DNA from: Lytechinus pictus
Lineage: Eukaryota
NCBI RefSeq assembly: GCF_037042905.1
Contig: NC_087254.1
Span: forward strand, 25,172,001-25,236,000
Length of the DNA stretch: 64,000 bases
Reading direction: 5' to 3'
Shown: positions 14,589-47,600 of the stretch, in pieces
How positions within the stretch are numbered: the stretch's first letter is position 1
Layout of the letters: the number at the start of each line of letters is the position of its first letter
Translations under genes and position numbers: made by a program
Notes under the pieces: generated by a model
What the model was told of the DNA's origin: nothing
Databases searched by the model: none
Seen by the model: the letters and a program-made list of their open reading frames with translations, nothing else

Positions 14589-15620
14589 CCCGGGGGCCCA
14601 CTTACATTGAGGAGTTATACCATGCGCGACCCCAAAAACACATAAAATTAAAAAGGATGTCTTTTTCAAGATAGGGCACGTTACGTATGTAAAGTAAGAA
14701 GGGTGTCAAAAACACTAAAATAATGAACAAAATATTAAGGGTATCCATTTCGCGAGGAAAGCTATGTGTTTAGGGTCAGATTTGTGAGGGAATAAAGAAT
14801 TAATACAAATGTTTTATAAAGGATGTACTTTTCGCCCCAAGTCAATAAACACTACGTGTTTAGAGTACGAGGTGTGGGAGGTGGGGCCGTACTAAACCCA
14901 ATGATGTAGGTAAAGCCAAGGTAAAACCAACAACCAACGTCCGTGACATAACAATTGAAATATCGCAGTACTTGTTTAGGGGTTCAATTCAGGGAATTCT
15001 TAATTGCCAAGAGTATCATTTTGTTTCCAATGCTTTTTAATAAGGGTAGGGTTTCACACGTCAATACTTAAGGGGTGCATTTTCAGAATATGGAAAATAT
15101 GTGTGTAGGGTGCTTTTCGAGACCCCATGGTTGCGCCCGGCCGCGCATGGTATCCACTCGCAATGGAAGTACTAAACCCAATGATGTAGGTAAAGGTAAA
15201 ACCAACAACCAACGTCCGTGACATAACAATTGAAATATCGCAGTACTTGTTTAGGGGTTCAATTCAGGGAATTCTTAATTGCCAAGAGTATCATTTTGTT
15301 TCCAATGCTTTTTAATAAGGGTAGGGTTTCACACGTCAATACTTAAGGGGTGCATTTTCAGAATATGGAAAATATGTGTGTAGGGTGCTTTTCGAGACCC
15401 CATGGTTGCGCCCGGCCGCGCATGGTATCCACTCGCAATGGACGTGTGAAACCCTTAATTGCCAAGAGTATCATTTTGTTTCCAATGCTTTTTAATAAGG
15501 GTAGGGTTTCACACGTCAATACTTAAGGGGTGCATTTTCAGAATATGGAAAATATGTGTGTAGGGTGCTTTTCGAGACCCCATGGTTGCGCCCGGCCGCG
15601 CATGGTATCCACTCGCAAAT
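14589..15620. mobile_element. CCCGGG-terminated MITE (family B) with triplicated right end
   Basis: Left TIR CCCGGGGGCCCACTTACATTGA...ATACCATGCGCGAC; right-end block GCGCATGGTATCCACTCGCAA occurs three times (~15140, ~15420, ~15600). Confidence 0.8.
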
Positions 15621-16067: not shown

Positions 16068-17502
16068 ATGCAGAGAGTGAGTAGTCTAGTAAGCTGTGAA
16101 TGGCTTTCCCGAATCTTATCACCACAAACTCAATATCTCAGAGTTCTGGATGGGAATTGGTACATGCCAGGTAGCGGGAAGGACCCAAAAGCAGAATTTG
16201 CCAAAAAGCACATCCCTGGTGCAGAGCAGTTCAGCATTGATGATTGCACCCTCCCACACTCTCCTTTCTCCCATACTCTTCCAACACCAGAGTTCTTCGC
16301 CGAATATGTTGGGGAACGTGGCATCTGCGACAACACGCATGTCGTAGTCTATGACAGTCACCCACAGTACGGAATATTCTCAGCGGCAAGGGTTTGGTGG
16401 TTGTTTCGTGTTTTTGGACACAATGCTGTCTCAGTACTCGATGGAGGGCTCCCTCTGTGGGAGAAATCAGGTTATCCTTTATGTAGCAGCACAGCTCCCA
16501 GTGAGGTGGAGAAAAAGGAGTTCAAAGCCGAGCTTCAACCAAATTTGGTCCGAAGATTTAGCGATATGACAGGCAATCTGAAAGCAAACAAGTTTCAAGT
16601 GATGGATGCCAGATCTCCAGCCCGATTCTTTGGCCAGGTGCCTGAGCCACGAGAAGGTACGTATCTGAAATTTTGATTTTTTTTTTTTTTGATTTTTTTT
16701 TTTATGGAAACAGATTTGAGTAAATTGCTTTTGACTGGAGTAATTAATTAAAACAAGTTTAACAATAACATTAATTCAAACTAGCATACATGTAAACTAC
16801 ATGACAGTTTGATTAAGCAGAGTCTTGAAAAGACATTCTGAGATATGATGAGCATATGGTCATGATGACTGTTATTACGGTAATGGCCATTTTTAAGAAA
16901 AACTTGAAAAACATCCTAATAAATCATGAAATGTACCGGTACTAATTATATAAAATAATCAGTCTTAAGAGACATTATTACAGGGAAATTTGGTTTTAGG
17001 CAATTACAATCAATATTTAGAAAACATAAACACTTATGATTGTCTGATGAATTTAGATTACTCATATTTTAGAAAATTAGAATATTTTTAGAAAATTCAT
17101 ATTCATATGTCATATTGTGCTCTAACATATTTTAATCATGATTGTAAACATGACTTCTTGTCTTGCTTTTGTTTGTAACATGTAGGATTATGCCGTGGCC
17201 ATATGCCAGGTTCTGCTAATGTGCCTTTCAATACCCTACTCAATGATGATGACTCAGAAAAAGCACGCCTGATGAAGTCCCCAGAAGAGCTTACCAAGAT
17301 ATTTGCAGACCGTGGCGTTGACCTCTCCCAACCTGTCACATCAACCTGCGGGTCAGGGGTCACGGCCTGTATCCTTGCATTGGCTGCGTACAGAGCAGGA
17401 AAGAATGATGTTGCTGTGTATGATGGATCATGGGAGGAATACGGTCAGAAAGCAACGGAAGATCAGATTGTGGTATGTAATCCTGAAGCAAATGCTGGTT
17501 AA
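16068..17502 (+). CDS. MPST: 3-mercaptopyruvate sulfurtransferase (tandem-domain rhodanese), 301 aa; exons 16068-16656, 17186-17502
   Basis: LVSCEWL, LDGNWYMP, HIPGA, SAARVWWLFRVFGH, VLDGG, DARSPARFFGQVPEPR, GHMPGS, active-site loop CGSGVT (Cys codon 17347), YDGSWEEY; a single phase-1 intron after EPRE-G, the position recalled for vertebrate TST/MPST. Confidence 0.93.
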
Positions 17503-17742
17503 CAGATTACAGAATGTGACCTTTAGACACCTGAGTACTTGAGATGTCTAGAATTTAAAAAATTGTCAAACTAGGAACAATTCATTTTTGTCAAAGGTTT
17601 TTTGTTCAGAGTTAATTTCATTTAATAAACCACTAGCAATTGTGGGGGACTCTTTTGCAATGTCCGATGGCTATTATTATGTCTTGCAGTCAAATCTTCC
17701 TTTACCCCTATCAATTTTTGACTGGTTTGAATTCCTGTTTAA

Positions 17743-19286
17743 CAGGGCTCGACACTAGCGGCGGTCCGACGGTCCCAGACCAGTAAAAATCGCTGTCGGG
17801 CCAGTAGATTTTCAGAAATAGGAAGATTTACTGGTCCGACATGACCAGTAAAAAATATCATTTTCTTTGTTTCTTCCCTCTTTTCTTTCATTTTTTTTGT
17901 TCTTTCTTTCCTTTTAAANNNNNNNNNNNNNNNNNNNNNNNNNNNNNNNNNNNNNNNNNNNNNNNNNNNNNNNNNNNNNNNNNNNNNNNNNNNNNNNNNN
18001 NNNNNNNNNNNNNNNNNNNNNNNNNNNNNNNNNNNNNNNNNNNNNNNNNNNNNNNNNNNNNNNNNNNNNNNNNNNNNNNNNNNNNNNNNNNNNNNNNNNN
18101 NNNNNNNNNNNNNNNNNNNNNNNNNNNNNNNNNNNNNNNNNNNNNNNNNNNNNNNNNNNNNNNNNNNNNNNNNNNNTTTAATTCTCGAGTCCATCCATCC
18201 TATATTCATCTCTTCTCTCATTCCTTTCTTTCCTTCTTTTTACCCTTTTCTTTCCTTCATTCTTTGTTACTTTCTTCCTTCCATCCATCATTTATTTACC
18301 CTTTCTAGTTGTTTTTTATTTCTTCCTTCTTCCAACCCTTTCTCTCTTTCTTACATTCATTCCTTCCTTTCTTATATATGTCTTGTTCTTTCCTTTTTCC
18401 CTTTGTTAAATCTATCCTTTTACCTTTCCTTTCTTTTTTTGACTGCTTGCTTCCTTTCTCTCCTTTATTCTTTCATTCCTTCCTTTCTTTGTCTCTCAGT
18501 CTTTCTTTTTTTCTTCCTTTCATCTATTATTTTCTCTTTTTTTTTATATTGCTTGCTTCTTTCCTTCCCTTCCTTTATTTCTTTCCTTCTATCTATCATT
18601 TACCTTTCCTTTATTTCTTCCTTAATTCCTTTCTTCCTTCTTTCAATCCTTCCTTCCTCTCTTTCTTTATTTTGACCTTCTTTCCATCTCTCCTTTTACC
18701 CTTTCTTTTGTATTGCTTCTTCTTTCTTTCCTATACTACTTACTGGATTTGTTCTTTCTTTCTGTATTGCTTGCTNNNNNNNNNNNNNNNNNNNNNNNNN
18801 NNNNNNNNNNNNNNNNNNNNNNNNNNNNNNNNNNNNNNNNNNNNNNNNNNNNNNNNNNNNNNNNNNNNNNNNNNNNNNNNNNNNNNNNNNNNNNNNNNNN
18901 NNNNNNNNNNNNNNNNNNNNNNNNNNNNNNNNNNNNNNTCCTTCCTTTCCTTCTTTAGTTCTTTCTTTTTTTCCTTCCTTCACATCTATCCTTTCTTTAC
19001 CTTTTCTTTTTTTCTTCCTTCCTTCCTTTCTTTTATTCTTTTCTTTCTTTCTTTCTTTCTTCGTTTCTGTCTTGCTTTCTTTTTGTCCTTCATTCCTTCA
19101 TTTTATTTGGGGGGGGGGAACGAAAGGCTAGAAAAATAAACTTGCGCCTTTTTTTAATGTTTTCTTTATTTTTGGGGACCAGTAGATTTTAGGTTCGGAC
19201 CAGTAAAAATTTGAAAAACTGGGTATCTACTGGTCCGACATGAATAGGTTGGACCAGTAGAAAAAATGGGTTAGTGTGGAGCCCTG
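17743..19286. mobile_element. hAT-like non-autonomous element with a long internal pyrimidine-rich tract (contains gaps 17919-18176 and 18776-18938)
   Basis: TIR CAGGGCTCGACACTA / TAGTGTGGAGCCCTG (14/15 match); subterminal GACCAGTA repeats; no convincing TSD. Confidence 0.65.
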
Positions 19287-21068
19287 CATTTAATCATGGC
19301 CACAAATTGAATCTGATCACGTTTTGTATATTTTTTAGCATGAAACAGACTCGAATAAGACTCAGTGGCTCAGTGCACACATATTTTTTTTTCTCTCATT
19401 GAACACTGCTTGGATAAAACTATGTATTCCTTGCCATTTCTGGCAGACAATAGCCATTTGAAATAATACTGAGCTTGTCAGCAAATGTAAAACAAGCTAA
19501 TTTCTAAAACATGGGAGCAAGTTGTAAGAGAGGATGTGCTATTTCTATTCAAACTTTGTCCTCCAAGAACTAAAACAAATGGATTGACATCTGATTTAAT
19601 GCATTAGATATTCATAGCTGCAATTTATTTAATGATAAGGGAGTCATATCCTACACACATGTACGAAAATATTGAATAATCATGATTTCATGTAAGAACA
19701 TAAGAAAAGGAAAGGGGGATGTGACATCATCAGCCCACCTAATGAATAGTCTTGATGATATGTAGAACTGTTTTCACAAAATATTCAAAACTTTAAAATT
19801 CAAGTTAACTTTGTTATTTGTCATCTTTATTAATGGAAATGTCCAACATGTTGCTTGGTGAATTTTACTATAATTTTTCAGACTAGAGTACCCCTTTAAC
19901 ATGGTTGAGACTTATTGGTTATTTTGGGTGCAAAGCTACAATTATGCTGTGAAAGAGTCATGTTTTGATTTATGTTTTGATTCTTTGGGGAAAAAAGGGA
20001 AAGAAATTAACACTAAGTCTTTAAGTACTTTGGAGATGATGGAACATTATAGCCATGTAATAAATTGTGTGGGTACTTTGTATTTCTTCAATAGGATTAT
20101 TTGATGTTTTTTTTATAAATTACAATTTTGTATATATTCTGGGCTATTGTATTCTGGAAATATTTGAAGTCATTCTGTCCTATTCTACCTGTTTTACAGG
20201 GTTATTATGTTAATTGGTTCAAAGTAAACAATTATTTCACTTTGTGTTGAAAATGTGTGGTATTTGTCTATGCAAAGGCTAAATGTAACAGGGGATACTT
20301 ATCATTAGAGAAATAACAATGTGTGCTCTTATCTTTGGGAAAATAAGCTCAAAAATGTACTAACTTAAGTAGTGACAGGAGGTAATATTCTTGATGTCGC
20401 CAAAGAGAAAACAAGATTTGAAATGAATGCTACCATACATGATCAGTCAAACACTGAAATATTACAGCAATAGGCCTATCGCTGAATCCTAAAGGTTTTT
20501 TTGCAAATGCTTTACAGGGTACATTGATGTCACATTCCCATAATACTGCAGTATTGACATCCCAGGGTTACCATCATTAGAAGGTGTAACATCATGCTTG
20601 TACAATGAACTTTTATAATGAACCTTAAAATCGTCCTTCCATCTCGTATTACGCTCAGACTTTACATTTTGAAGTATTGTGTTTGCCCACCCTGAATAAA
20701 TCTTTGACTTTTTTATAGATAGGTTATACCCTTTTCATGTGTCTAGCTAGGGTTGAAAAAGTCCCAAAACTAAACCCTTTTTTAAATTATTTTAAGTCCC
20801 AAAAGTAAACCCTTTTACAATTATTTTTGCATTTTTGATGCACATTTCATTGCATGTACATTGCCCAGCCATGAAAAAAACAACTCTTGTACTTGCTTGA
20901 ATAGTGTCCACCTTGTAAGGGTCCCTCCCCCCCCCCCCCCCCCCCCCCCGATTGGCATATAAACTGGATCGTAGAATAAACCATGTATACCTCAGAAAAC
21001 TGGATATCTATAGAATTGAGTATCCATGCTTTAATCATGGAGCTATTTATGTTTAATAGCTCCATGCT

Positions 21069-21665
21069 TTAAAGGACAAGTCCACCCCAACAAAATGTCT
21101 ATTTGAATAAAAAGAGAAAAATCCAATTAGCATAGCACTGAAGATTTCATTAAATCGGCTGAAAAATAAGAAAGTTATGACATTTTCAAGTTCCGCTTGA
21201 TTAAAAAAAATAGTTATATGCACATCCCGGTTGGTATGCAAATGAGGGAGCTGATGACCTCACTCACTCACTATTTCTTTTGTATTTTATTACATGAAAT
21301 ATTCTAATTTTCTCCTCATTGTCCTGTGCAACAAAGTTTTATTTCTCCCTAAACATGTGGAATTACCCTTGCTCAACACTTTATGGTTCAGTCAAGTTGG
21401 TCCTTGTCAAATGTGTAAAAATTGAAATATTGTATAATTCAAACAATAAAAACAAAAGAAATAGTGAGTGAGGGACATCATCGATTCTCTCCTTTGCATG
21501 TGACTAAATTGTGCATATAACTATTTTTTTTTTAAAGCGAATCTTTAAAATGTCATAACTTTCTTATTTTACACCCGATTTCGATGAAATTTTCAGCATT
21601 ATGTTTGTCTGATTTTTCTCTATTGATTGAAATAAACATTTTTCTGGGGTGGACTTGACTTTTAA
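21069..21665. mobile_element. Kolobok/T2-MITE-like family A copy 3
   Basis: TTAAAGGACAAGTCCACCCC ... GGGGTGGACTTGACTTTTAA. Confidence 0.85.
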
Positions 21666-22745
21666 TATTAAGTAGTAGACATATATAAATGCAACTAGAC
21701 ATCACTTTGTGTGCTTCCTTTGATATCAAGAATCTCATATTGATACCTTGATGTTCAGTTTACTTGTTATGCACAAAACCGAAAAGTACATATTCACAAA
21801 TATACAGCTGGTTGTTGGGTGAAGTATATGTATTATTTGTATAGAGATGCACAAATTCAATTCATCAACATTCCCCATTCATGTACACACAAATTTGTGT
21901 CAGGTATGATACTATTGGAAGTACCTCGGGACAAACTACAATGTACGATACAAGAAGGCACAAAAAGTTTCCCCTATAATCATTGTGGCATAATTTTTTA
22001 GATAAAAATAGCTTTGTCAATGTGTTCCTAAAGGTATACTTTGTCTGAAGTCTGTGTGAAATTAAGGTGATTCATGCATGGGTGAGTATCTCAGACAAAA
22101 TATGAACTTTTCAAAAGTGAACAGACCACAGTCTTTTTTGGTGGGGGGCGTATTGGGGTGGTATTTTGAAAAGCGGTAATACTGTAATTTTGACTATTTA
22201 CAATTTTGCCATTCATTTTTTAAACAGTTTATCAATCTTTTTTTATTTTTCAAAAAGGTTAGTCAATAAGTGTCAAAATATCTATATAAATTTGTGTTGC
22301 TTTTGTTCAAAATCACCTGTGTAGAAATCAATGTTTTACTATATTGTACTTCAGCTCATGATATTCAGTTTGAGTTCTGTGTTTACATCACACAGACATC
22401 TTTGCATGATAAGTTGCATTTTTGCTTCTATTTAACTTTAAATTTTCCTCATTTTTTTGTTTTTGTATAGACCTGCATTTACTACATATTACCCAAAATG
22501 TGCTTGAAATACTTTTTAATACCTCCTTTGAAATATGTTGTCTTTATTGCCTGATGTGAAATACTAGTTTAAATCCCACCTTGAAATAGTTGACCAGTAA
22601 TACTGCGACATGTCTTTAGTGTGAAAAGTACATGTAGATACTTGCTTATGCAATCTGAAATAAAGTAAAGAGACTATACTACTGTGATAAAAATATATGT
22701 AAAGCAAAGGTGTTTCATGCATTAGATTTAAGTCTTTTCAGTTGC

Positions 22746-22960
22746 TTAATAATGATAATAACTATAATTATAATAATGATAATAATAATGATAATAGTAA
22801 TAATGATAATGATAATAATAATGATAATGATTAATGATGATAATAATAATAATGATGATATTTATTTTTGTTATCATTATTTTATTATTGTTCTTATTAT
22901 TATTATAAAATGACAATAATGATAAAAATACAATGATAATTCTAATCATAATTAGTATGA
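22746..22960. repeat. (ATA/ATG)n trinucleotide microsatellite
   Basis: Visible in the sequence. Confidence 0.9.
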
Positions 22961-24573
22961 TGACATCAATATTGAAGAATTAATAGAAGAAATAATAAAC
23001 ACAATTGGAAGAAGAGAAGTAGAACAATCACTGTTTTATTGAATGCCATGAAATATATGAGCTTTTATAAGAGAAACAATCTCTGATGTTAAATAATTTA
23101 CAATATTAACCAGAAAACTATATATATATATATATATATATGTTAATGTTATGCATTTTTCTTGTATTTTGATATCATCAGAATGATTAATAATGCAGTT
23201 TTTATGTATGTATTTTTCTTTTGGTAAATGTATGAAGTATAGTTTTGTAACTATCATAGTGCTTTTCTTTAATATTTTATTTCTAAACATCAAAATAATT
23301 TATAAAACTTAAAATGAGAAGAAGGCCAGATTTTTGTTCATGGATTACATAATAAAAATGTTGCATATACGTCAATATACCTAGACATCTTTATTTTGTC
23401 ATCACATTTCTCAATCTACATATTCCCTTCAATCCATCTTCCTGCTGTATCTACAACTACAAGTATATACATTTTTCATCATTTACTCAGAGTTGTGTGG
23501 TATTAAGCTATATTCAAATGAAATAAGTATTAACTAGAATAAGGAATTAATATCATTTACAATACTCTTCACAAGACCTAGAAAATCATTGAGATTTTGA
23601 AAACTTATGCGATGTGTTTTTATGATGGTGTGTGCAATTTTGTGTATTTTCATGTATCTATACATGTGCATTGCAACAGAAATTGTAAAAATATGCGATG
23701 TGCTAGTGAATAATGGTTTAACCAAAAATCTGGTACGTTTTAACCACAAGAGATTTGGAAATGATGATTTCTCTGTGGCCAATTTTTATACCAATGTGGT
23801 ATTTTTTGCTTACATGTACGCACTCTATATAGTTAACCATTACACTGGTTATTTGATCAATTCCTTTATGAGAGTGTATCTAGTTGATGAATTTAACACA
23901 CAGTGCATTTATAATTGTGGAAAGAATACTACTAATATTATTTAATGCTTTGATGTTTTATTGTCGTGTGAAACTAAATTGAATTTATAGATTTCAGATC
24001 AGCAGAGCTGAATAAAAACCCCTGTGAGGGATGGAATGGAAAAAAAATAAATGCTGTGTCTGAGAATTTTTTTTTTTTTAGTTGAAGGTTAAATTGTGAT
24101 TTTAGAAAGAAAGGAAATCCTGTGTATCCCGCCCCCCCTCTCTCTCTCTCTCTGTCTCCCCCTCTTTTCTTTTCTATCTCTCTCTCTGTCTTTCTTCCCC
24201 TCCATTTGTAAGTTAGCGTGATTGAATAAACACTCGACTATTTCTATTAACAGTTCAAACAATCATATTCGCTTGCGTTCAAAGTACCATGTTTGACAAT
24301 GAGGTTATGCCAACGATCAAATCTTGGTTCAGCGATACAGGATATGAATTTGATTAGAAAAAAAAAAGAAGATAAAAAAAATAACTGAGTCATTCTGAAT
24401 ACGTCGGTTTGTTATGAACCTTATGAAGAACACGTAGATTATACAGCCTACATTGCTGGACTTACTGGGATTTTGTTATACTAGTTTGGGGTGTATAGGC
24501 GCTTGTGGCTGAAATTTGCTACTTTACAAGTGGTAAGATTATCATTATTTATTTTATGATAATTTTTGTATTG

Positions 24574-24835
24574 TTAACCCTATCTAGGCCGGGGTATTTT
24601 GGGAGTTCATATGGCCGGGGGGGGGGGCCTCCCAGGCCCCCCTTGAAATCTCGGCCGTCGACTTCACAATCGCGCCAAAAATTGGCACGCGGGTTGCCTG
24701 GGACATAATCTACAAAATCGTATAGTAATTTATTTCATGCGAATCGCTATTAAGTGATTATGTTAATTTATGCGTATTAGTATGCAAAATCATACTTATC
24801 CCTCTAACTCCCTGAATAAAGCTCAAAATGTTAAA
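24574..24835. mobile_element. piggyBac-like element fragment (left end)
   Basis: TTAACCCTATCTAGGCCGGGGTATTTTGGG start, similar to the element at 46143. Confidence 0.5.
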
Positions 24836-25071
24836 AGAAGTTAAAAGAGAGGGGGAAGAAGCGAGAGAACTTACTGTGCATTTTGATATCTTACTCAAAT
24901 ATGGCTCAAATCTTTTTTCTATCACATGCCTTCCCTTCGTTTGTAAACTTGGTTGCTGTCAGAAGTAATTATGTTTCTATCAACAAGCTATCAATATACG
25001 TGACCACTGTCACTGTAGATTTCAACATTGGACCTCTCTCCATAGAACCCAAGGATAAAGGAAATTCCACC

Positions 25072-26133
25072 CCCGGGGGGGGGGGGGGGCCACTTACATT
25101 GACACGAGTGGATACCATGCGCGACCAAAAAAACACGTAAAAAGGATGTCTTTTTCAAGATAGGGCACGTTACGTACGACGTAAGTATATAACGTGATAA
25201 GGGTGTCAAAAACACAAAAATATTGAAAAAAAAAAATATCTATTTCGCTCGGAAAAATATACGTGTTTAGGGTCAAATATGCGGGGATGATAAAACAAAA
25301 TCAAAATGTTTTATAAAGGATGTCCTTTTTGCCCAAACACTACGTGTTTAGAGTCCGATTTGCGCGAGGTGTGGAAGGTGGGCCGTAAACCAATATAATG
25401 GTGTGTAAGGTACCCGTGACATAACAATAAAATATCGTTGTACTTGTTTAGGGGTTCATTTCAGGGAATACTTGCCAAGAGTATCGTTTTGTTTCCAATA
25501 CTTGTTAAGGGGTGCATTTTCAGAATATGGAAAATACATCGCTGTACTTGTTTATAGGGGCTCAATTCTGGGAATACTTGCCAAAAGCATTTGTTTCCAA
25601 TACTTGTTAAGGGTTGATTTAAATATAATGGAAAAACAAACCAACAAGCATTATGAATCCTATGTAAAATAAGGAATTGTCCCCCCTTTTAATTTTGGTT
25701 GTTTTTCACAAAGCAGGTACAAAATTGTGATCATCACAGTGCATGAGAGTGGATGATGTCACTCCTATTGGTTAAAGTATGCAATAGGCCTACTTTAAGT
25801 TTTGCAGATTTAACCATTAGAAGACTTCATCAAACAGTTGTAATTCCACATGTCCAGAGATGATTCAACGTTGTTTCATATTACATTGAGGAGGAAATTT
25901 AAATATTTCACATTTCATGTATTATGAGATACAAAAAAATAGTGAGTGTTGTCATTTATTCCCTCATTTGCATACCAACCCAACAGGAATGGGGAGATAT
26001 CTGTGTTTTGTGAAATTAAGCAAAAAGCTTTGAGAAAATTTCACAACTTCGTTATTTTACATAGGAATTTAATGAAATTTTAGCTTGGGTTTGTAATTCA
26101 AACTAACATTTTGTTTGGATGGACTTCCTTTAA
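25072..26133. mobile_element. Family B MITE (truncated, ~25072-25615) fused to a degraded family A element (~25610-26133)
   Basis: Family B left TIR CCCGGG...CCACTTACATTGAC; family A-like right end GATGGACTTCCTTTAA. Confidence 0.65.
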
Positions 26134-26797
26134 ACTCTCCTTCCGATATAGAAGAATACATACAGCGAATATTTTTTTCTTCAGTGGTTCTGCACTATAT
26201 TTTCAATTCTTTAAAGAAAAAGAATGAAAACTTACTGCACATTTTGGTTTGATAATTAAATGTGTTATTTCCCCAAATGGAGTATAGAAAGATTAAAAAT
26301 AATAATAAATAATAATTATAATAATAACAATAATAATACTAATAATAATAATGATAATAATAATAATGTTCAGTAATAATTCAATATTGAAAATCTTCAT
26401 TGCACCGTGTACACAAAACACATTTTCAATGTTCACACAATGTTTTAAAAGGCAAATGCAACATTGACTAAAAAACTTGTTTCCCGCTCGCTTCATTCCC
26501 TCGCTTATATTTAAATAGGATCATTCGAGAATCAAAATGATTCGTCAATAAATGTGATCACATCATAATAATCATAAGGGACTTATTCTGAATGGTTTCT
26601 GAAGCGAAATAATTCACAGAAAGCAAAGCGAATGCTATTTTTTAAAACAACTGTTTACATAAATCTTAGTTTTTTTTATATGCATCATTTAAATGACAAG
26701 GAAAGAGATCGAGAGAGAAGTAACATATTAAAGAAAAGTGTGTTGTTACATGATCAAAATTCTATCTTCTGTAGGCTAAAATATCAAGCGGAACACC

Positions 26798-28443
26798 ATG
26801 GCATCATCTGCAGGGAAAGTCCCCGCTTTAGTGACAACGGAGTGGTTGGCCGAAGCTTTAGAGGCTGGGAAGACCCCAGATGGAAGATCGATTCGTCTCC
26901 TTGACGCCACATGGCTCGGTATGGCAGATGAAGGTCGGGACGCTCACGGCAAGCAGCACATTCCAGGAAGTCTCTACATCGACCTCAACCAGCTCCGCAA
27001 CAAGGACACTTCGTATTACTTCACCATCCCGACTTCGGAGTTCTTTGCCGAGTTCGTTGGGAAGACGCTCGGCATCGACAACAACACACACGTGATCGTC
27101 TACGAGAATGACCCTTACTATAGTATCATGACGGCGCCTCGGATCTGGTGGATGTTCCGATATTTCGATCACGGCGTCGTGTCGGTGCTCGATGGTGGAC
27201 TTCAGCAGTGGGTTGCCGAGAATCGAAGGGTCACCGATGAGGCAACACCAGCTCCTCAGCCAGCCAATTTCAAGGTGACGAGAACGCGTACTGAGATCTT
27301 CAAGAACTTTGATGATATCTTAGAGAACGTAAAGGAAACTAAATTTCAGTTGATGGATAGTCGTCCAGTAGAATGGTATGATGGTACATTGCCTTCTCCT
27401 TATCCAGGTAAAATATATCATCAAAACTTTGGTTTTAATTATTGACCATAATCATAGGCGGCGGGGGGGGGGGGACGTGTCCCCCCCCTAAATTTTAGGT
27501 GGGGGGACGGTCCCCCCCCCCCTTAATTTTTTGTTGATAACCCTTTTTTTTTTTTTTTTTTTGCTTGTCAATTTTTTTTGCCTGCGTCCCCCCTAAAATT
27601 TTTGGTTGATAACCTTTTTTTTTTTTTTGCTCTTCAAAATTTTTTTGTGGTCCCCCCTAAAATTTTTGGCTTCCGCCGCCAATGACCATAATAAGGACAT
27701 CCGACAAAAATATTCTGGTAATTGAAAAAAAAAACACGATCATTATAGCGTTCTAAATCAGCAGTATACGGCTGCTCACTAAATGCTCTCTCTGATGTTG
27801 TTCAGGTCTAGATACCCAACCCACCCACCCCTGCATCTGATTTACTTGTTACGCAATTGTACACTATATGTCCAACGATCTAGCCTACTATTTGTATTTA
27901 GTCTGTATTTGTTTATTTTGTTGATATAGAAATGTATTAAGAGTATTGAATTTTGAAATCTGGATTCGCAATACGAAATCTTTCTGTCTAAAAAAATAGA
28001 GATAATTTCTTGTGCACGGGATCGAGTCCCCATTTTTTCCAAGTGCATGACTGTAAATTGCAAAATAACAGATAACATGTCCTCCGTTTACAGGTTTAAA
28101 ACTCGGGATCATGAAGATGGCAGTCAACATCCCCTTCCCAAATATCCTCACAGAGGGATCCTCCAAGTTCAAGAAGCCCGATGACATCAAGTCACTCTTC
28201 CATTCAAAGGGCATTGACCTATCCCGACCTTTGACCTCGACCTGCTTCGTTGGTGTCACCGCTTGCATCTTGGCCTTTAGCGCCTTCTTGGTCGGGAGGG
28301 AGGACGTGGCGGTGTTCGATGGGTCTTGGGATGAATATTCTCAGAGAGGCCCCGATGATTCTATGACTGTTTATGAAGTTAAGGTCAACCTGAATGATAC
28401 TGATGACACTTTCCCGCCTGTGCCGACATTCAATAAACAATAG
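26798..28443 (+). CDS. Divergent MPST/TST-family sulfurtransferase paralogue 2, 319 aa; exons 26798-27407, 28094-28443; active-site loop CFVGVT
   Basis: Intact ORF: LVTTEWL, LDATW, HIPGS, APRIWWMFRYFDH, VLDGGL, DSR, DLSRPLTSTCFVGVTAC, FDGSWDEY; same phase-1 intron as MPST; acceptor TTCTGTAG just upstream of the ATG. Confidence 0.9.
27453..27684. mobile_element. hAT-like MITE, 8-bp TSD, in the intron of paralogue 2
   Basis: TSD ACCATAAT (27445-27452, 27685-27692); TIR CATAGGCGGCGG / CCGCCGCCAATG. Confidence 0.85.
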
Positions 28444-29293
28444 AAACGACTTCCCTATGATGAGCATCATGAATTTACAATCGAACGTTATTTACGCTTT
28501 CTTGCTTCTAATGGAGATTTATAAATTTAGATTGTTGTTATCAACGATGTAATTTGAAATAATACTACATTATAACTATCTCAGAACCAAATATGTGTGA
28601 TACCGCGGAAGGAATAATGATGGGGCCATTTCAATTCCACTGACCCTCTCTTTCTGACTTCATGATAAACAAAGGTCCGTTCATATTCATACCGTGGAAA
28701 TTCCCGGTTCATAATTTTTATAAAGATATAAATTAGTATATGATCTCTTTGTATTCATAACTCACGTATCTCAGTCAATAAATAATTATAAGAGAAAAAA
28801 AAAATCATTTTTTTTTAAATATCATCGTTAAAATGCCGAATGCTATCACAACGTTATTGGTTAATTTACCAGCATTATTTAAGTTATGACGGAAACCAAA
28901 GGACCTCTTAATGTGATTGTTTCTTCTATATTGTACCGTATACATTGTTAATCTTTCTTTTGAAAAACAATTATAACTAACTTTATAGACGCCGCGGAGT
29001 TCATCCTCTTTCAGAAAAATAAATTTAGTAATTGTCATTTACACCTCTCATTGAATTTCTAATAAATTTGTTTCTGAACATGAATTTCGTCCGTCCGTCT
29101 CAGTTCATTGTGAGAGAGAGACCAATAAATATTATAAAGTTACTTTCAAGACCCATTTACACATTTTGTTTTTCCTTTTGTCAAATCCATATCAGCCGCA
29201 ATATCTGCATCAGCTGCAAACTTGTAAAAACACCATTAACAACAACAACAAGAACAACTCAATTTGTTGCTATATTATTGCTGATATGAGTCA

Positions 29294-30342
29294 CAGTGGC
29301 GTAACTACGGGGGGCATGGGGGCACGTCCCCTCCAAAAAAAAAACGGGGAAAAGGAGAAAGAGAGGGAGAAAGAAAGAAAAATCTTAGAGGGGGATGAAT
29401 AAATCATTGCATATTATATTATACTATGTTATATTATATATTACGTAATAAATATTTTTCATAACTTTATGAAACATAATTTGCTTAGGGCCTATGTGTT
29501 CATCATTCCTGGTGCTCGCATTGTCTGTTTAAATCCTGTTGTACTAAAAACATCCCGTTTTCAAGTCAATATACACCAAATAGGCCTTTAGTTCCAGTTA
29601 TTATTGCTTTAAGTAGTGGCATAATATTATGCTTCTTTTTCATGTTTACCTAAAGCGATTGCCCCCTTCTAAGGTCTGAATATAAATTATTTCCAATCCG
29701 TACATACGTTTGCGTTAGTGGATTGGTGAAATATGTAAGCTCTTTATGAATTCCTAAAAACAATTCTTAAATTGTCCCTTTTCTAGTCTGAATATCGAAA
29801 ATTTTCAACTCGCGCTTCGCGCTCGCATCAATTGTATAGTGAAATACTTATGGTCTTAGTGAATTCCTACAAACAAGCATAAGACTAAATGCCCCTCTTC
29901 AGGTTTGAATTCCAAAAATGTTCAGCTCACGAAGTGATATACGTATCATGCTGATGATTACAATGACTACAAAAAGTGTTTCATGTGTTTAAATGTAATT
30001 CTAACAAAATCAGCAAGCGCTTGGCGCTCGCATTAGATGGATATGGTGAGATATGTATGCTCTTCATGAATTTGAAAAAAAGTCCTCATTGTCCCTGTTT
30101 GGGGTCAACATATGCAAATTTCAGCTCGCGCTTTGCGCTCGCATTGTTTGTTTACTATTAGTGAGACAGGTATGTATCATGATTGTAATTTTTTTATAAT
30201 GTCCCTTTTTTTAGGTCTGAATATAAAAAAAAATTCAGCTCGTGCTTCGTGCTCGCATTAAGTGAGTGAGATACATATTCGTTTAATGGCACAATCCTCA
30301 AAATTTCTCTTTCCCAACGCCGTGACCCACGGTACACCACTG
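29294..30342. mobile_element. hAT-like non-autonomous element, 8-bp TSD
   Basis: TSD ATGAGTCA (29286-29293, 30343-30350); TIR CAGTGGCGTA / TACACCACTG; internal repeats CTCGCGCTTCGCGCTCGCAT. Confidence 0.85.
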
Positions 30343-30823
30343 ATGAGTCATACATGCACTTTGGAGGAAAGGATTAAACAAATATGGCAGGTGGGACTCT
30401 TGCTTGTGAGCAAGAGTAAAGAGTTAATAAGCAAACTATTTAACACCAATCTCTAGTCTGTTTTCTTGATCATTAAAAGCTTGAAAAGGAACAATGTTAA
30501 AAGCGTACAATTTCAATACAATTATTTGACAGTTACATACGAATATCCAATTTCTATGGATGTCCTTTAACTTGCCTCAGTGCCCCTCTCATTATTGGTG
30601 ACGGATAATTGTGTGCCCTTTGATTTATTTGTCCATCTTTTCAATTCATGCTGTCAAACGTTTGTCGTTATCATCATTTCAATTCGTAATGTAATAACCT
30701 CTAGAAGAGTGACCTTTCCATACAAAAATTGAAATTTAGGGCTTTGATAGCACAAACAATTAATTGTACTCATCGCATTTTAAATAAAGCTTAAATGTGC
30801 GCATTTTAAAGCATTATCGGTAT

Positions 30824-30993
30824 GGGCGTTGTGGCGTGCGCCTGTAATCCAAGCTACGTGGGGGAAGTTACAAATTGATGCAGAGGTTCGAACCCTGGTC
30901 ACGTCTTTCGGATGGTGACGTTAAAGGTCGGTCCCAGACGTAAATAATCATATATGATTGATACACGTCTGACAAAACTCAAATACACACACA
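30824..30993 (+). mobile_element. 7SL-RNA (Alu-domain)-headed SINE with B box and (CA)n tail
   Basis: Perfect 12-bp TSD CATTATCGGTAT (30812-30823, 30994-31005); head GGGCGTTGTGGCGTGCGCCTGTAATCCAAGCTAC; B box GGTTCGAACCC at 30885-30895; ACACACACA tail. Confidence 0.8.
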
Positions 30994-32066
30994 CATTATC
31001 GGTATAGGAAAAATACACTGCATGTTTTAGAAATCTATATAGCTACAATTGTCTATCTCTAGCTAGCTAGATGGATGGATATATAGAGAAATAGATAGAT
31101 GGATGGATTGATGGTTGAATGGATGGATAGATAGATAGATAGATGAACCCACGATATTTCTCTAGAAAATATTTGAAGTATTTGGGATTACTTGCAAAAG
31201 TGGGGTTTGCACCAGACTACAGACTTTGCCACGTACCATCCTCTGCCCCCCGACGCTTCTGCCTGGATACACTCAGATGCGAGTGTTTTCATAATTTTCA
31301 GAAAGGTTGAATGGGGTCATATGCGCATGAAGCAACCTTAAAAGACTGAGATTAATGAGTTAAAAACAATTTGACAGTTGATCCGATACCTCAGTCTCAC
31401 TTGGGAATCTCCCTCGATCCAATAACTGACCCAAAACAATAAGACGGTCGAGTTGAACTGGGTCTATAAGAATTCATGATGTAATATCTTATTGAATTAC
31501 TAGATTATTTAAAAAAATCTCAACTTCAGTACGCGGGAGAACATGGTGGTATTTCTGGAGGATTTATTTCTTTATTTTATTTTTATAATCTGTTATGGAT
31601 ATTATGCAAAACATGTGATGGGCATACTTGGCTTACTCGACCAGAACAATTCTGATTCTGTAGGACATTACAATGAGTTTGGTATTTTAATCCTTATCAT
31701 CCTTGTCAAGAACATTATTATAAACTACGAATGTCAGATTTGTTCCCAACAGCGGTGTCCCAAACTGACGGGTCATTATTTTGCGCCAAACATAACGATT
31801 TGAATGACTGATGGTGATGTGAATGTTGTTTTGAACTTTTGGTATACATGTAAACCCTCTGTGGGATTACTTTGCATGCTGTGACAGAGGTTTTCCAGAA
31901 TATTCACTAGATACCTAACCTATACTGTACAATATAAACAGGCACCATATCTCACTCGGCAAACACGGGTTGTAAATAGACAGCCCGGATAGACAGTCTA
32001 CATTCTTTCGCATAATTATACTGAAAAGAACTGCGGCCGGCAACAACAAAATTGATTCATTATAAC

Positions 32067-35000
32067 ATGGCTGGGAATGCTTCGTCAATACCACCTCTGG
32101 TAACCACAAAATGGTTAAGCGATGTACTACGTGAACAACAATTCTCTTCGTCGTCGTCGTCATCGTGCTCGGTTCGTGTACTTGATGCGACATGGCTAGG
32201 GATTGTGACAGAGGGTCCAGATGCTTTCCGAGTTGAGCACATTCCCGGATCTGTTCACTTTGATCTCAACCAATGCAGAGATAAATCTTCCCGCTTTTAC
32301 TTTACACTTCCATCTGCCGAAGAGTTTGCAAAGTAAGTGAAGGAAACCAGTGAATATAAAAAACACATATTTTTGTCTTAAACCATATTTTTTAAAATTT
32401 ATATTATAGTCTGTTGCATTTGAGTCCCGTCTACATTGATTTGATTTTCAGAGATTAATAATTTTGTAAATGGGCGGCATTGAAATAGGGTATAGATGGT
32501 AAACGTGTTATGTGGCTATAAGCCTATATACACGGGATCCAATAGAAAGCTGTGTATGTCATTTTCCACAAAACCAATGTCTTTCATCCACCACATAGTT
32601 CTATTATCAATTTATACTCTTTTTACTCATTCGGAGTACACAGTTGCTTCACGTATAAAACGCCCGACAAAGCATTAATAAATTTTTACCATATTTGCAG
32701 GTAGTCTATTCACTGATTGCTTTTCAGGGTTTTCAGTATTTACCCGATGACCTCGTTCTCTGCAGTCCTGGTTCTCTGTTCACGTGTATCGATAATTTAA
32801 GAATGAACAATAGAACAACTTCTGAATAATGAGGCATATAGTGATTTTAATTTAAAAAAAATGAAAAGACTTATACTATATGTATAGATTTAATTTACGT
32901 AGTTTATAATGGAAGATATTGGATATTGAGATTTTATTTGGTACGGATTTGACAGTATTAACCAAAAAATTACATCAAAACATTGAAGAAGATACATAAC
33001 GACATATTTTTTTTGCATTCAGTGTTTTTTTTTTATTCCTTTTTTTTTAATCGCCCACAAATTTCAACGAATAAAGATGCGAAATGTGAAATATGATATT
33101 TGTTTAATGTTATGACAAAATCTCTAACGAATTTCGATTTTAATTCTTAAGAAGATCAAAATTTTCGCTCACTCAGAAGTTTTGGGAAATGTTACCCCGG
33201 TATTCCGGTGTGCCCTCTCATTTTTTGTTGGCTCATTGCGGCACTGACATAACCACAGGGGTCACATTATCATTCATAATGGATGATATCATTAATGATT
33301 TCCTTGGATGGCAGGTACGTAGGCGAGCTAGGTATCGACAACGAGACCCACGTGATCGTATACGAGAATGATCCAATATTCAGGATGATGTCGGCACCTA
33401 GGACATGGTGGATGTTCAGAACGTTTGGTCATGACAAGGTATGGAGAAGAATAAGTACAAAAGAGGAAACGGAGAGAAGGGGAAAGAGGAGGGGAGGAAA
33501 ATGGAATAATAACAGTTCGGAGACCAAGTCATTTCAGTCAATAAAAACATTTGGTTTCACTAAAATTATCGGAGTTAGTGCTGGCAACTTTGTGTTTATG
33601 GAACCATGGGCGGGAATCCCAGGGGGGGGGGGGGCAGTGGGGACGCGTCCCCCTACCCCCAAAAAGTAGGGGGGGACACCGTATCACTGATGTCCCCCTA
33701 TACTATTTTTGGTCTTTTATGATGGAGAAAAATACATCATCATTTAAAATCGAAATAATACATGTATTTTGGATTAAGTGACCTTACATTTTGGGTGAAA
33801 ACCTTTTTGGGGGGTTAAACTGACCTTACATTTTGGGTGATAACCATTTTTTTTTGCTTGTCAAATTTTTAAGCCCCTGGTCCCCCCTACCTTTAGGGAC
33901 AGATTTCCGCCTATGTATGGAACCAATCTTGTGTCTCATTAGGATCGATGTATTCTTATCTTATTTTTTTCTCTTGTGTCTTGAATTATATTTTTTAAAG
34001 AATAGTATTATACATATTATTTTATCCATTCGTTCAACGAAATCTTGAACTGTTATGAAAACCTTTCTATATTGTTCCTTTTCTATACATTTGTTCATAA
34101 TTTACTCTTTCTTGAACAGTATTTCACAAGGAGTTAAGCCATGTTTCGCTTTCATCTTGGTAGAAAAATGAAAGGTCAAAATATCAGTGTGAAACAGAAC
34201 GAAGTTTTGTCATCTTTTGTTCAAAGTAACTCGCGTGGTTTGAAACCCATTTAATATGGGGTTCACCAAAGGAATATGAATGCCAAAGCCAAAGTTAAAC
34301 TATATATATATATTCGGTTTTTCCTTTAAAATTTACTTCCAAACCAATCAACTTTAATACCCAAAGATCTCAATACTGGACGGAGGTTTGAAACAGTGGA
34401 AGGAGGATGGTTTCGCGGTCGAGGGCGGGAGCCAGACGGTTGACCAGCGGACCTTCATGGCCAAGCCACCCAACCCACGCCTCATCAAGCATTTCGACGA
34501 GGTTTTAGATAACCAGAAGACCGAGGAGTTTAGTTTGATTGACAGCAGGTTACCAGAATGGTTCGACGGGAGTATGGATTCTATTTGGCCTGGTAAGATA
34601 ATGAGAGAGGAAACAAGCTTATAATGAGCCCCAAAAAAAGAAGAAACAACAAACAAAACAGAATTGAAAGATTAACTACAATATTGAGAACAAAACTATA
34701 CAAATGAGAAAAGATGAAATAGAAGAGAAAAAAATAATCATTCATGTATGTAGTCATTAAAATATTTAAGAATTTGCCCTACAATTCGAAAACAGATGAG
34801 AAGGAATAACAAAACATATACCACCCCCCCCCCGAAAGACATGCGCATAATGCCCGGGGGCCCACTTACATTGGCGAGTGGATACTATGCGCAACCAAGA
34901 AAACACGTAAAAAGGATGTCTTTTTCAAGATAGGGCACGTTACGTACGTAACGTAATAAGGGTGTCAAAAACACTGAAATAATGAAAAAAAGGTATATAT

Positions 35001-36200
35001 TTTCACTAGGATAGCTACGTGCTTAGGGTCAAATTTGCGAGGGTGTATAAGACTAAAATGTTTTATAAAGGATCACTTTTTGCCCCAAGAGTCAACACTA
35101 ATAATTTTGAAGCGCTCTGAACAGTCGTAGATTGATAAAGCGCTATATAAATGCCAATTATTATTATTACGTGTTTAGAGTATGATTTTGCGCGAGATGT
35201 GGGAGCTGCAGGGGCTGTACTAAACCCAATCAGGTAAAACCGACGACAGTGACATAATAAAAATATCGTTGTACTTGTTTAGGGGGTCAATTCAGGGAAT
35301 ACTTGCCAAGAGTATTGTTTTGTTTCCAATACTTGTTAAGGGTAGGGTTTCACACACTATACTTGTCAAGGGGTGCATTTTCAGAATATGGAAAATACGT
35401 GTTAAGGGTGCTTTTCGAGACCCCATGGTCGCGCATGGTATCCACTCGTCAATGGAAGTGGTCCCCCCGGGGCATTATGTTATATTGTCGAGCTATATGA
35501 AGATTTTTAACAATGTAACTTGATGCTGGGATTATCAACGGAAGACTTGGAAATAGGTAAAAGCAGAAACATTTGAAAAAAGAGATAAATTAGAAGGAAA
35601 GGGGGAGATGAGAGTGATACCTTAGATAAGTTTACCAAAATACTGGAAGTAAAATAATTCATTTTGTGGAATATTATAGCAAGTAAAACAAATCAAATAA
35701 AATTATTTAGGGCCAGAAAGACAAGGTATTATACGAACATGCACATATAGGTCCAGATCTTCGGGAAAATTGAAGAAGAAAAATAGAAAAAGTAGAAATA
35801 GAAAGAGGAGAAAACGTGAAATGCAAAACATATTTGTAAACATTAACTAAGAATAAACTTATAACTGTCATATACATATTTTATTTCATCTTCTTCTATA
35901 GACTTGCCATTGGGGTACATCCTTAAGTCGGTCAACGTTCCTTTTGGTCGATTGGTCCGTAGTGATAGCGATCGCATGGTAGCGCGGGAAGATATCCTTC
36001 AACTTTTTCAATCGGCGGGTATCGATCTCTCACGTCCTCTCGTCAGCTCATGTTTTGTCGGCATCAGCGCATGCACAGTCGCTCTCGCTGCCTACGTGGT
36101 CGGGAAGGAGGACGTTGCGATCTACGACGGATCGTGGGATGAGTTTTGCAAACGAGCACCAAAGGACTCGCATGTCATCGTTCCCGATCCTCCAAAATAA
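32067..36200 (+). CDS. Divergent MPST/TST-family sulfurtransferase paralogue 3, 304 aa; exons 32067-32332, 33315-33438, 34367-34592, 35902-36200; active-site loop CFVGIS
   Basis: Four exons join in frame (915 nt): LVTTKWL, LDATW, HIPGS, APRTWWMFRTFGHDK|ISILDGGL, DSR, DLSRPLVSSCFVGISAC, YDGSWDEF; GT-AG introns. Confidence 0.88.
33605..33915. mobile_element. hAT-like MITE, 8-bp TSD
   Basis: TSD TATGGAAC (33597-33604, 33916-33923); TIR CATGGGCGG / CCGCCTATG. Confidence 0.85.
34853..35471. mobile_element. Family B MITE, complete, containing a LINE 3'-tail insertion at 35101-35169
   Basis: TIR CCCGGGGG-CCACTTACATTGGCGAGTGGATAC / GTATCCACTCGTCAATGGAAGTGG-CCCCCGGG; flanks GCATAATG / GCATTATG. Confidence 0.85.
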
Positions 36201-44663: not shown

Positions 44664-47600
44664 TCATGATCCTCCTTGAGCGAGATCGCTTTGATCCTCG
44701 ACAGCATCGGCGAATTCATCATCGTCTCCGGCATCGGTGGAGTCTCTACTCGACGTTCTCTCGAGACCCTGGTGCACCTTTCTGTTCGTTTCCGCTTGGA
44801 GGCGCTGTTCATACTTCCTCACGTCTTCTTCGGTCATGTCTGAAAGGAAGGATAATTCATCAGAGCAACAAAGAGCAGTTAAATCATCAAACAAATCAAT
44901 CGAGGTGTGCTTAAAGGGATACTCCGAGCTGAAAATATTTATATCTAGATAAATAGAGTAAAATTCAGAGCAAAATGCTGAAAATTTCATCAAAATCGGA
45001 TAACAAACAAATAACAAATAAGTTATTGAATTTTAAAGATTTGCATTATTCCGGTAAAACAGTTCTAGGCATTTCTTCATGAATATTCATTAGGTGGGCT
45101 GATGATGAAACATCCCCACTTTCCTTTTTCTTATGTTATTACCTGAAATCATAATTGTTTCATTTTTTCATAAATGTGTAAATGATGTGTCTCCTTTATG
45201 ATGAAATAAGTTGTAGCAATAAATAACTAATGCACCAGTTGTCAATCCAGTTGTTTTAGTTCTTGGTAGAAAATTCATGAATGAACCTAATTTCATATAC
45301 TAAAATACAAAAGAACAAGTGGGAATATGACATCAGCCCACTTAATGAATATTCATGAAGACATGCCTAGAACTGTTTCACCGGTATAATGCAAATCTTT
45401 AAAATTCAATAACTTCGTTATTTGTTATCCGATTTTGATCAAATTTTCAGCATTTTGCTTTGTGAATTTTCATCTATTTATTGAGATATGAATATTGTCA
45501 ACCTGGAGCATCCCTTTAATGGAGTTAACGCTTTATATTTGTTTGTTTGGTTGTTTTTTAATTCAGCTGTTGCTGATAATTTTGGTACCAAAATCTTATA
45601 ATGACCCCAAACAAAGACAAAATGTATCTGTTTGTCAACACTTATGTACAATGACTTGCCAAGAAATATGGGTGGTGTTTAATAAAACTGTTAATCATAA
45701 CTTTACATATAGGTGCTACTCTTACTCCACATCACCAGACTTATCTGTTTAAACATAGGAAGAATTCCCCTTTTCAAACATATCATAAATTTTGAATTCA
45801 GATGCTTACCAATTCATTGAATTTCAATCTTTAAATATAAGATTTCAAATTAAGTCAGTTGGAATGAATACGAGAATCTGATTAGGCTTCAAAGGGCATT
45901 TCACAAATTATGAGTGAAGTCGTGCATAACTTCTGCACAGCTTTATGAAATGTAATCTTTCCCAGACAGGAAGGCAACCATTAGAAGAATTAAGGGTTCA
46001 ACTTCACAAAGTGTGACAAATGAGTTCTTGATTTTGACTTCACAATTAAGCAGGGTGATATATAGTACCAAAGTCTTATCAATGGCGTAGATTAAAGCAG
46101 CGAAACTATTGTTTGATTTACTCTGGCGACAATTGCTCCACTTTAACCCCTACAGAGCTGGGTTATTTGGACCCCTCGGCCTTCAATCGTGCGAGCGTCG
46201 CCAGTGGTAGTGTGCGCTAAAATATATAAGGATGTATGGTTATTTTTTTTGAAATAATAAGATATTTCATTAAATGAATTAATTATGCTAATTTAGGCAT
46301 GAAATTAAACATTTGCTCTAATCAACTATCAAACGGCACCAAAACTGCTATTTCTTCATTCACAGACTCTTTGTAGGATCCTGATCAAATGTACTTAAAA
46401 AAAATTTGGTATCGCAATTTTTTTCTTATGTATTTTGTTTTTTAAATTTCTTATGTATTTCTATGTTTTTTATTGTTTTGTCAATAGAAATTGTTGCAGA
46501 CTCAATGCTGATCATTTACAAGACAAAATTAATTAAGTTTAATCAGTAAAAGTAGGAATAATGATACATTTATCAATTTTGGCTAAGTACACAATTTGCA
46601 TTGGATTTGTACATGAATTCACGTTTTTGAGCAGTTTTGGGTCTGACATGCACTAACATAATGCCCAGGGGGGGGGGGGGGGGGGCCACTTACATTGACG
46701 AGTGGATACCATGCGCGACCAAAAAAACACGTAAAAAGGATGTCTTTTTCAAGATAGGGCACGTTACGTACGTAACGTAATAAGGGTGTAAAAAACACTA
46801 AAATAATGAAAAAAGGGTATCTATTTCGCGAGGAAAGCTACGTGTTTAGGGTCAAATTTGCAAAGGTATAAAAAATCGAGACTAAAATGTTTTATAACGG
46901 ATGTACTTTTTGCCCCAAGAACCAACACTACGTGTTAAGAGTACGATTTGCGCAATCGTGGGGCTGTACTAAACCCAATGATGTATGTAAAGGTAAAACC
47001 GACGTCCGTTACATAACAGTTGAAATATCGCCGTACTTGTTTAGGGGTTCAATTCAGGGAATACTTGCCAATTATCGTTTTGTTTCCAATACTGGTTAAG
47101 GGTAGGGTTTAACACGCCAAAACTTGTTAAGGGGGCATTTTTAGAATATGGAAAATACGTGTTTAGGGTGCTTTTTGAGATCTCATGGTCACGCATGGTA
47201 TCCACTCGTCAATGGAAGTGGCCCCCTCCGGACATAATGTTGCGTAATTTCGTAACATCGTAACCGGGCATCGCAAATTTGGTCTCAAAAGTTGTGCGAG
47301 ATTTAAAAGTAAAAAGTCACGGTTGAAAAATTTTGCGTGGCGGATTTATCGTGAAAAATTTAGAATCTGCCCCCCCCCTCAGGCCTTTTAGGGTTAAATT
47401 CCACACACTAATCGAAAGTCTAACTAACCCTGGATTCAACATCCTATACTAAACCTAACTATAAACCTTACATAGAACCCTGTTGCAACCCTATATCGTA
47501 GAAGAAATAAAGCCAGGAACAATTTGTCACAGAAGCAAATATTGTGTCACATATTATTCGGGGAGGGGGGGGGATGAACTGTTGCGTCATCCTTCCACTT

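Follow-up and report, generated by a model that had tools for sequence, protein, structure and literature searches.

Two rhodaneses of the sea urchin Lytechinus pictus belong to an expanded echinoid subfamily with an apparently rebuilt substrate pocket

Rhodaneses carry sulfane sulfur as a cysteine persulfide cradled by the backbone amides of the active-site loop, and this loop, together with nearby cationic side chains, selects the anionic sulfur donor. The closest described systems to the genes discussed here are 3-mercaptopyruvate sulfurtransferase (MPST) and thiosulfate sulfurtransferase (TST). In human MPST, Arg188 and Arg197 hydrogen-bond 3-mercaptopyruvate (3-MP), a Ser-His-Asp triad is present, and Arg188, Ser250, Tyr108, Glu195, and Arg197 contact ligands in crystal structures (PMC12926118). 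In TST, the positive charges of the loop CRKGVT bind thiosulfate, and their neutralization raises the Km 17-fold (PMC9369223). The present analysis concerns three sulfurtransferase genes, referred to as g1, g2, and g3, in a 64-kb window (the whole stretch of DNA that was analyzed) of chromosome-scale DNA from the sea urchin Lytechinus pictus (contig C10, 25.17-25.24 Mb). We consider it probable, at roughly two chances in three, that g2 and g3 are functional members of an echinoid-specific, MPST-derived "Trp clade" whose proteins are no longer 3-MP or thiosulfate enzymes. In rhodaneses, the active-site loop and a handful of cationic residues are believed to determine which substrate is used; nearly all of these are replaced together in the echinoid clade. 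The replaced set has been maintained by purifying selection, seemingly from before the split between Diadema and Lytechinus, and L. pictus has five copies as against one canonical MPST. The clade thus offers a well-defined case in which a new sulfurtransferase specificity can be tested, in species, L. pictus and Strongylocentrotus purpuratus, that serve as laboratory models. A full-text literature search retrieved nothing published about urchin sulfurtransferases or a CFVG-type loop, and the database names are automatic "TST-like" assignments.

All three genes lie on the + strand between positions 16068 and 36200 and encode intact two-domain rhodaneses with GT-AG introns and open frames, according to open reading frame and splice-site reading; a tblastn search with family members found no fourth copy in the whole window. 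The encoded proteins of 301, 319, and 304 residues match, without any difference, the L. pictus RefSeq entries P0349 ("3-mercaptopyruvate sulfurtransferase-like"), P0352, and P0009 (both "thiosulfate sulfurtransferase-like"), respectively. The tandem, same-strand arrangement proposed in a preliminary description of this DNA is confirmed. The first exon of g1 (16068-16656) encodes the N-domain and the linker with Asp59, His69, Arg186, and Arg195, and the second (17186-17502) encodes the catalytic domain with the loop CGSGVT at 17347-17364 and the stop codon at 17500-17502. Together with the loop Ser, these residues, found in the motifs ID-D, FSHTLP, PARF, and EPR, constitute the full set of MPST determinants, as had been claimed, and the C-domain motif reads GHMPG. 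Judged by these residues, g1 would be an ordinary canonical MPST.

The g2 gene (type A of the clade) comprises two exons: exon 1 (26798-27407) carries Asn64, Phe75, Trp193 (27374-27376), Ser200, and Tyr202 (27401-27403), and exon 2 (28094-28443) carries GIMKM (28105-28119) and the loop CFVGVT (28243-28260). The g3 gene (type C) comprises four: exon 1 (32067-32332) with Asn68 and Phe79; exon 2 (33315-33438), which encodes N-domain sequence including Arg112 in the loop equivalent to that bearing MPST Tyr108; exon 3 (34367-34592), which encodes the linker with Trp195 (34559-34561) and Trp204 (34586-34588); and exon 4 (35902-36200), with GYILK, the loop CFVGIS (36051-36068), and the stop codon. 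In both proteins, the catalytic Cys (Cys254 in g2, Cys256 in g3) opens the six-residue C-domain loop, and the codon positions given for it previously, 28243 and 36051, are exact. All the motif replacements listed in the preliminary description are present, i.e., DLNQ, YFTIP, VEWY, PSPY, GIMKM, and CFVGVT in g2 and DLNQ, YFTLP, PEWF, DSIW, GYILK, and CFVGIS in g3, including the loss of GHIPG. The MPST loop CG[ST]GVT is found in g1 and in neither g2 nor g3; Arg188 and Arg197, both kept in g1, correspond to Trp193 and Tyr202 in g2 and to Trp195 and Trp204 in g3; and the triad Ser250-His74-Asp63 is replaced by Val256/Phe75/Asn64 in g2 and Val/Phe79/Asn68 in g3. The TST hallmarks, namely, the cationic loop CRKGVT and Arg186, are likewise missing: no basic residue occurs in the loop of any of the 13 clade members aligned, and Arg186 is replaced by Trp in every one of them. 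The loop is therefore of neither the MPST nor the TST type, as noted earlier. On this residue evidence, g2 and g3 fail every MPST feature tested (the loop, the two arginines, and the triad) as well as every TST feature (the cationic loop, Arg186, and orthology, discussed below). The earlier emphasis on lost MPST residues holds relative to MPST and is weakened in part with respect to the triad, since TST also lacks its His and Asp.

Nevertheless, g2 and g3 belong to the rhodanese superfamily and, by descent, to the two-domain MPST/TST family. Pfam PF00581 scores 81 bits for g1, 55.4 for g2, and 73.8 for g3 against a gathering cut-off of 22.2, although in g2 it reports a stretch of the N-domain only, the catalytic domain (residues 170-300) falling below reporting despite a fold predicted with a local distance difference test score (pLDDT) above 90. 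The bacterial model NCBIfam NF008557 (equivalog cut-off 250 bits) scores 228.6 for g1, 190.7 for g3, and 171.6 for g2; as even the canonical g1 falls short, this model is too strict for animals and weakly informative.

The divergence was further characterized by a column screen, independent of the residues chosen in the preliminary description, in which the 13 clade members were compared with 51 other MPST/TST sequences from animals and bacteria, and columns were retained when they were at least 70% conserved in the 51 and the clade residues were almost never seen there. Eight columns passed; six of them correspond either to MPST active-site residues described in the literature or to the pair of loop positions adjoining the Cys. 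In g2 numbering, His74 of MPST is replaced by Phe, Tyr, or Val (position 75); a Gly by Glu, Asp, His, or Gln (192); Arg188 (TST Arg186) by Trp in 13/13 (193); Glu195 by Ser in 13/13 (200); Arg197 by Tyr, Trp, or Leu (202); the Pro of GHIPG mostly by Lys (211); the loop Gly by Phe, Tyr, Ala, or Asn (255); and the loop Ser250 by Val or Ile (256). Furthermore, the equivalent of MPST Tyr108 is Met or Lys, Asp195 and Glu/Asp192 are fixed in the clade, a Lys or Arg occupies position 109 in 10 of the 13 members (Ser in Lytechinus g2), and a Lys at 211/212 is typical. Cys254, Gly257, and Ala260 (Cys, Gly+3, and Ala+6) are invariant in alignments of 64 and 13 sequences, and the six-residue cradle loop is kept as C-x-[VI]-G-[VI]-[TSA]-A. 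Because the same replacements are fixed across 13 sequences representing four echinoid genera, their sharing by g2 and g3 is not due to chance. The changed columns sit mostly at active-site residues; therefore, the divergence is focused on the substrate pocket, and this divergence is itself conserved. Position 255 is constant within and different between paralogue types (Phe in A and C, Tyr or Ala in B, Asn in D), which suggests sub-specialization among them. As inferred from homologous positions, the pocket may not be purely hydrophobic, given Asp195, Glu/Asp192, Lys/Arg109, and Lys211/212.

Compared with MPST (human 4JGT and g1), the Trp clade shares the two-domain rhodanese fold (template-modeling (TM) score 0.93-0.95, root-mean-square deviation (rmsd) 1.7-1.9 Å), the catalytic Cys in a six-residue C-domain loop, a phase-1 intron between linker and catalytic domain, and a tandem position, whereas its loop is C-[FYAN]-[VI]-G rather than C-G-[ST]-G, the residues at the Arg188, Arg197, Glu195, His74, and Tyr108 positions differ as listed above, GHIPG is lost, and identity is approximately 36-39%. 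TST (bovine 1RHD/8Q5Z and human 8AGF) is the top match of g2 in both sequence and structure (42-43% identity, TM 0.92-0.93), shares with the clade the lack of the His/Asp triad, and has a mitochondrial form, as type B would by its N-terminus, although the clade lacks the CRKGVT loop and has Trp in place of Arg186. Pocket remodeling in this family also appears, from the sequences of other lineages, to have occurred repeatedly and independently. In the gastropod Babylonia areolata, P0253 has Tyr in place of Arg188 and a linker "PSFFPG" similar to "PSPYPG" of the urchin, yet its loop is still CGSG and the tree places it among the MPSTs of molluscs; the teleost paralogues P0265, P0278, and P0304 have CAVG, CSCG, and CTAG loops, yet keep both arginines, unlike the Trp clade.

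When the complete L. pictus assembly was searched in all six frames, six two-domain rhodanese loci were detected, one canonical and five with the Trp, and no CRKG-type TST. The Trp clade of this species therefore comprises five members at three loci and four paralogue types (A-D), such that the uncharacterized subfamily proposed earlier stands, whereas its size of two paralogues does not. Type D is encoded by a single gene on the same contig at 5.05 Mb (C10:5052504-5053594; loop CNVGVT, motif "SHWFDG"), and type B by a tandem pair on the - strand of another contig (C11:10420613-10431111; P0006 with CAVGIT and P0007 with CYIGIT). The type B proteins begin 43-52 residues ahead of the start of the conserved fold, with 4-6 Lys/Arg, many Ser/Thr, and no Asp/Glu, a composition that resembles a mitochondrial presequence. 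Among 5.8 billion proteins, searches with a profile and with a restricted region returned clade members only from Lytechinus, Strongylocentrotus, and Diadema and a few fragments; clade members score at least 345 bits and the next matches, vertebrate TSTs, at most 304 bits. The rebuilt region alone (residues 183-265), searched against the same 5.8 billion proteins, retrieved echinoid proteins only. A fragment, P0105 (ENA sample ERZ26222911), is type-D-like. S. purpuratus and Lytechinus variegatus have the same one-strand arrangement of MPST followed by A and then C.

In a maximum-likelihood tree of 50 sequences (LG+C20), the 13 clade members are monophyletic (100/100), and D is sister to (C,(A,B)). 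The split between Diadema and the lineage of Lytechinus and Strongylocentrotus is Triassic. Diadema carries types A, C, and D; therefore, the duplications are older than this split. Vertebrate TST is located inside vertebrate MPST, which implies that TST and MPST diverged within the vertebrates. A tree constrained to unite the Trp clade with vertebrate TST is worse by 31.7 log-likelihood units and is rejected by the approximately unbiased (AU) test (p-AU 0.032; the grouping was named after the tree was seen), whereas one constrained to unite it with urchin MPSTs is worse by 0.6 units and is not rejected (p-AU 0.46). In phmmer searches g2 is closer to TST (3e-47) than to MPST (3e-39); orthology to vertebrate TST, hinted at by these scores, is rejected by the tree and the AU test, and because TST nests in vertebrate MPST and the joint grouping is rejected, the resemblance reflects similarity rather than orthology. 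Most likely, the Trp clade arose by tandem duplication of the neighboring MPST gene, in an echinoid or echinoderm, an origin that fits the AU result, the conserved order MPST, A, C, and the phase-1 intron common to the clade and the MPST gene.

These results bear directly on the possibility that the clade consists of ordinary thiosulfate or 3-MP sulfurtransferases in which Lys/Arg109 and Lys211/212 compensate for the lost residues, and which fill the role of TST in urchins, including in mitochondria. Such a role would account for the missing CRKG-type TST, the presequence-like type B N-termini, the clade-typical basic residues, and the higher scores of g2 against TST than against MPST. It is nonetheless unlikely, considering that the replacement of Arg188/186 by Trp is invariant, that the loop is devoid of basic residues in 13/13 members whereas the loop charges of TST are those that bind its substrate and whose neutralization impairs affinity (PMC9369223), that Lytechinus g2 has no basic residue at 109, and that the AU test speaks against the clade being orthologous to vertebrate TST (p-AU 0.03). 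The preliminary description held that these proteins cannot bind anionic 3-MP or thiosulfate in the usual way; the canonical residues for both are indeed gone, whereas an inability to bind anions is read from residue identity, and Lys/Arg109 and Lys211/212 could provide replacement charges. The sea urchin, judged by the L. pictus genome, lacks a vertebrate-type TST, and the automatic name "thiosulfate sulfurtransferase-like" is therefore probably misleading for pathway reconstruction, e.g., of sulfide detoxification.

Both paralogues are under strong purifying selection. In pairwise comparisons of L. pictus with S. purpuratus, the ratio of nonsynonymous to synonymous substitution (dN/dS) is 0.17 for g2, 0.12 for g3, and 0.09-0.11 for the MPST gene, at synonymous distances (dS) of 0.65-0.92; values of 0.12-0.17, far from 1, and conservation from Lytechinus to Diadema support the earlier view that the changes were selected and are not the product of decay. 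AlphaFold2 (AF2) models have a pLDDT of 93.0 (g2) and 94.1 (g3) and predicted TM scores of 0.91 and 0.92, and predict that the tandem α/β rhodanese fold, with its active site in the cleft between the domains, is retained in both. The structural overlay suggested in the preliminary description agrees with this: Foldseek, run on the g2 model only, superposes it on crystal structures of bovine and human TST and human MPST with target-normalized TM scores of 0.92-0.95 and an rmsd of 1.6-2.0 Å. Another reading is that these are non-catalytic binding, scaffold, or regulatory proteins in which the Cys is kept for redox sensing only, to which the failure of Pfam to recognize the C-terminal domain of g2, the loss of GHIPG, and the frequency of inactive rhodanese domains, including the N-domain of this same fold, lend some weight. 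This reading is quite improbable, since the Cys, the loop length, Gly257, and Ala260 are invariant over four types whose separation predates the split between Diadema and Lytechinus, and since the changes cluster in the substrate pocket and have been conserved in their turn.

With respect to expression, eight runs from the same species, guessed to be RNA, contain 100% of the sampled words of g3 exon 4 and only 26-31% of those of the 6-kb stretch 26700-32700. The latter share approximately matches that expected from the g2 exons, g3 exon 1, and untranslated regions (UTRs), coding sequence accounting for 20% by itself, and could not be produced by g3 exon 1 alone. Furthermore, a full-length type D protein is encoded without introns on a Logan contig of 1091 bp, a spliced transcript of a relative.

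Taken together, the evidence supports the view of the Trp clade as an uncharacterized, selected, and expanded lineage-specific subfamily with a rebuilt substrate pocket. In functional Trp-clade enzymes that have left 3-MP and thiosulfate behind, the ping-pong route of rhodaneses would be kept, with Cys254 (g2) or Cys256 (g3) carrying a persulfide that the backbone amides of the loop stabilize, and the donor, the acceptor, or both would be other than 3-MP or thiosulfate. The new partner, either a small molecule of neutral, aromatic, or cationic character or a persulfide of a protein or low-molecular-weight compound, would be received in a pocket formed by Trp193, Tyr/Trp202, Phe/Tyr75, loop residue 255, and Val256 and flanked by Asp195 and Glu/Asp192. 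Type B would be the mitochondrial form, and the other three types would be cytosolic. Several points weigh against this interpretation: the switch away from 3-MP and thiosulfate is read from residue replacements; the pocket geometry is extrapolated from homologues; the clade-typical Lys/Arg109 and Lys211/212 could rebuild an anion site; the expression of g2 and g3 is supported indirectly, by word shares in runs guessed to be RNA; and the restriction of the clade to echinoids rests on word-indexed searches.

A bolder version of this interpretation, which we regard as speculative and rather unlikely, is that the clade represents a new catalytic class of animal sulfurtransferase, in which an aromatic/acidic pocket (Trp193, Tyr/Trp202, Phe75, Phe255, Glu192, and Asp195) would accommodate some cationic or aromatic metabolite characteristic of urchins, candidates being a thiohistidine (e.g., ovothiol) and a polyhydroxynaphthoquinone pigment, and sulfane sulfur would be moved to or from that metabolite; if so, its cytosolic and mitochondrial isoforms would make up a branch of sulfur metabolism not seen before in echinoids. 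EanB of Chlorobium limicola (6KTV) provides a conceptual precedent only, as a protein of rhodanese fold whose Cys persulfide acts on an aromatic substrate that is N-methylated and not anionic; it comprises approximately 430 residues, is YnjE-like, and has an extra domain, as against 304-319 residues in g2 and g3. Kinship of the Trp clade to EanB, with which a comparison was suggested in the preliminary description, is not supported, EanB being a distant generic match of other architecture (22% identity; rank 32 and below in the Foldseek results for the g2 model, with target-normalized TM scores of 0.56-0.58, behind generic rhodaneses), and nothing links the genes to thiohistidines. An EanB-like transferase for ovothiol, ergothioneine, or other N-methylated or aromatic sulfur compounds is accordingly very improbable: sea urchin eggs are rich in ovothiol, and the aromatics (Trp193, Tyr/Trp202, Phe75, Phe255) and fixed acids (Glu/Asp192, Asp195) resemble a cation-π box in composition, but EanB ranks behind all generic two-domain rhodaneses, ovothiol occurs well beyond the echinoids, to which the word-indexed searches confined the clade, and the known synthesis of ovothiol by OvoA and OvoB requires, to our knowledge, no rhodanese.

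Several further features of the locus concern gene models and intergenic DNA. The window contains three runs of N, two of which, at 17919-18176 and 18776-18938, lie within 16068-36200, in CT-rich intergenic DNA downstream of g1; this pair starts 417 nt past the g1 stop codon, ends 7.9 kb ahead of the g2 ATG, and touches no exon. The flanking blocks 17156-17738 and 19287-19644 are collinear and adjacent in L. variegatus, where 17738-19287 is missing; therefore, the gap-bearing 1.5 kb is an L. pictus-specific, intergenic simple-repeat segment. Disruption of a gene by the gaps was ruled out, as they affect neither the exons and reading frames nor the order of the genes. With respect to g2, P0001 (313 aa), an earlier RefSeq version of this L. 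pictus protein, differs from P0352 and the window (319 aa) by two substitutions and in its last approximately 12 residues, which could reflect haplotype or annotation-version variation in an unstructured tail (pLDDT below 50; 28380-28443). With respect to g3, the 365-residue L. variegatus model P0353, which has a 61-residue N-terminal extension, suggested a mitochondrial presequence; this was rejected, and because the homologous L. pictus DNA (31876-32066, upstream of the start at 32067) has stop codons and frame breaks, the extension is probably 5′UTR read as coding or an annotation artefact. Between g2 and g3, approximately 190 bp at 30814-31003 are missing at the collinear point in L. variegatus (L006, position 18774) and look like a lineage-specific insertion. 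Finally, a dispersed repeat of approximately 130-200 bp occurs as three tandem-like copies just upstream of g1 (14889-15618), with more copies in the last g3 intron (35337-35459) and downstream (46688-47219), the copies being 84-100% identical.

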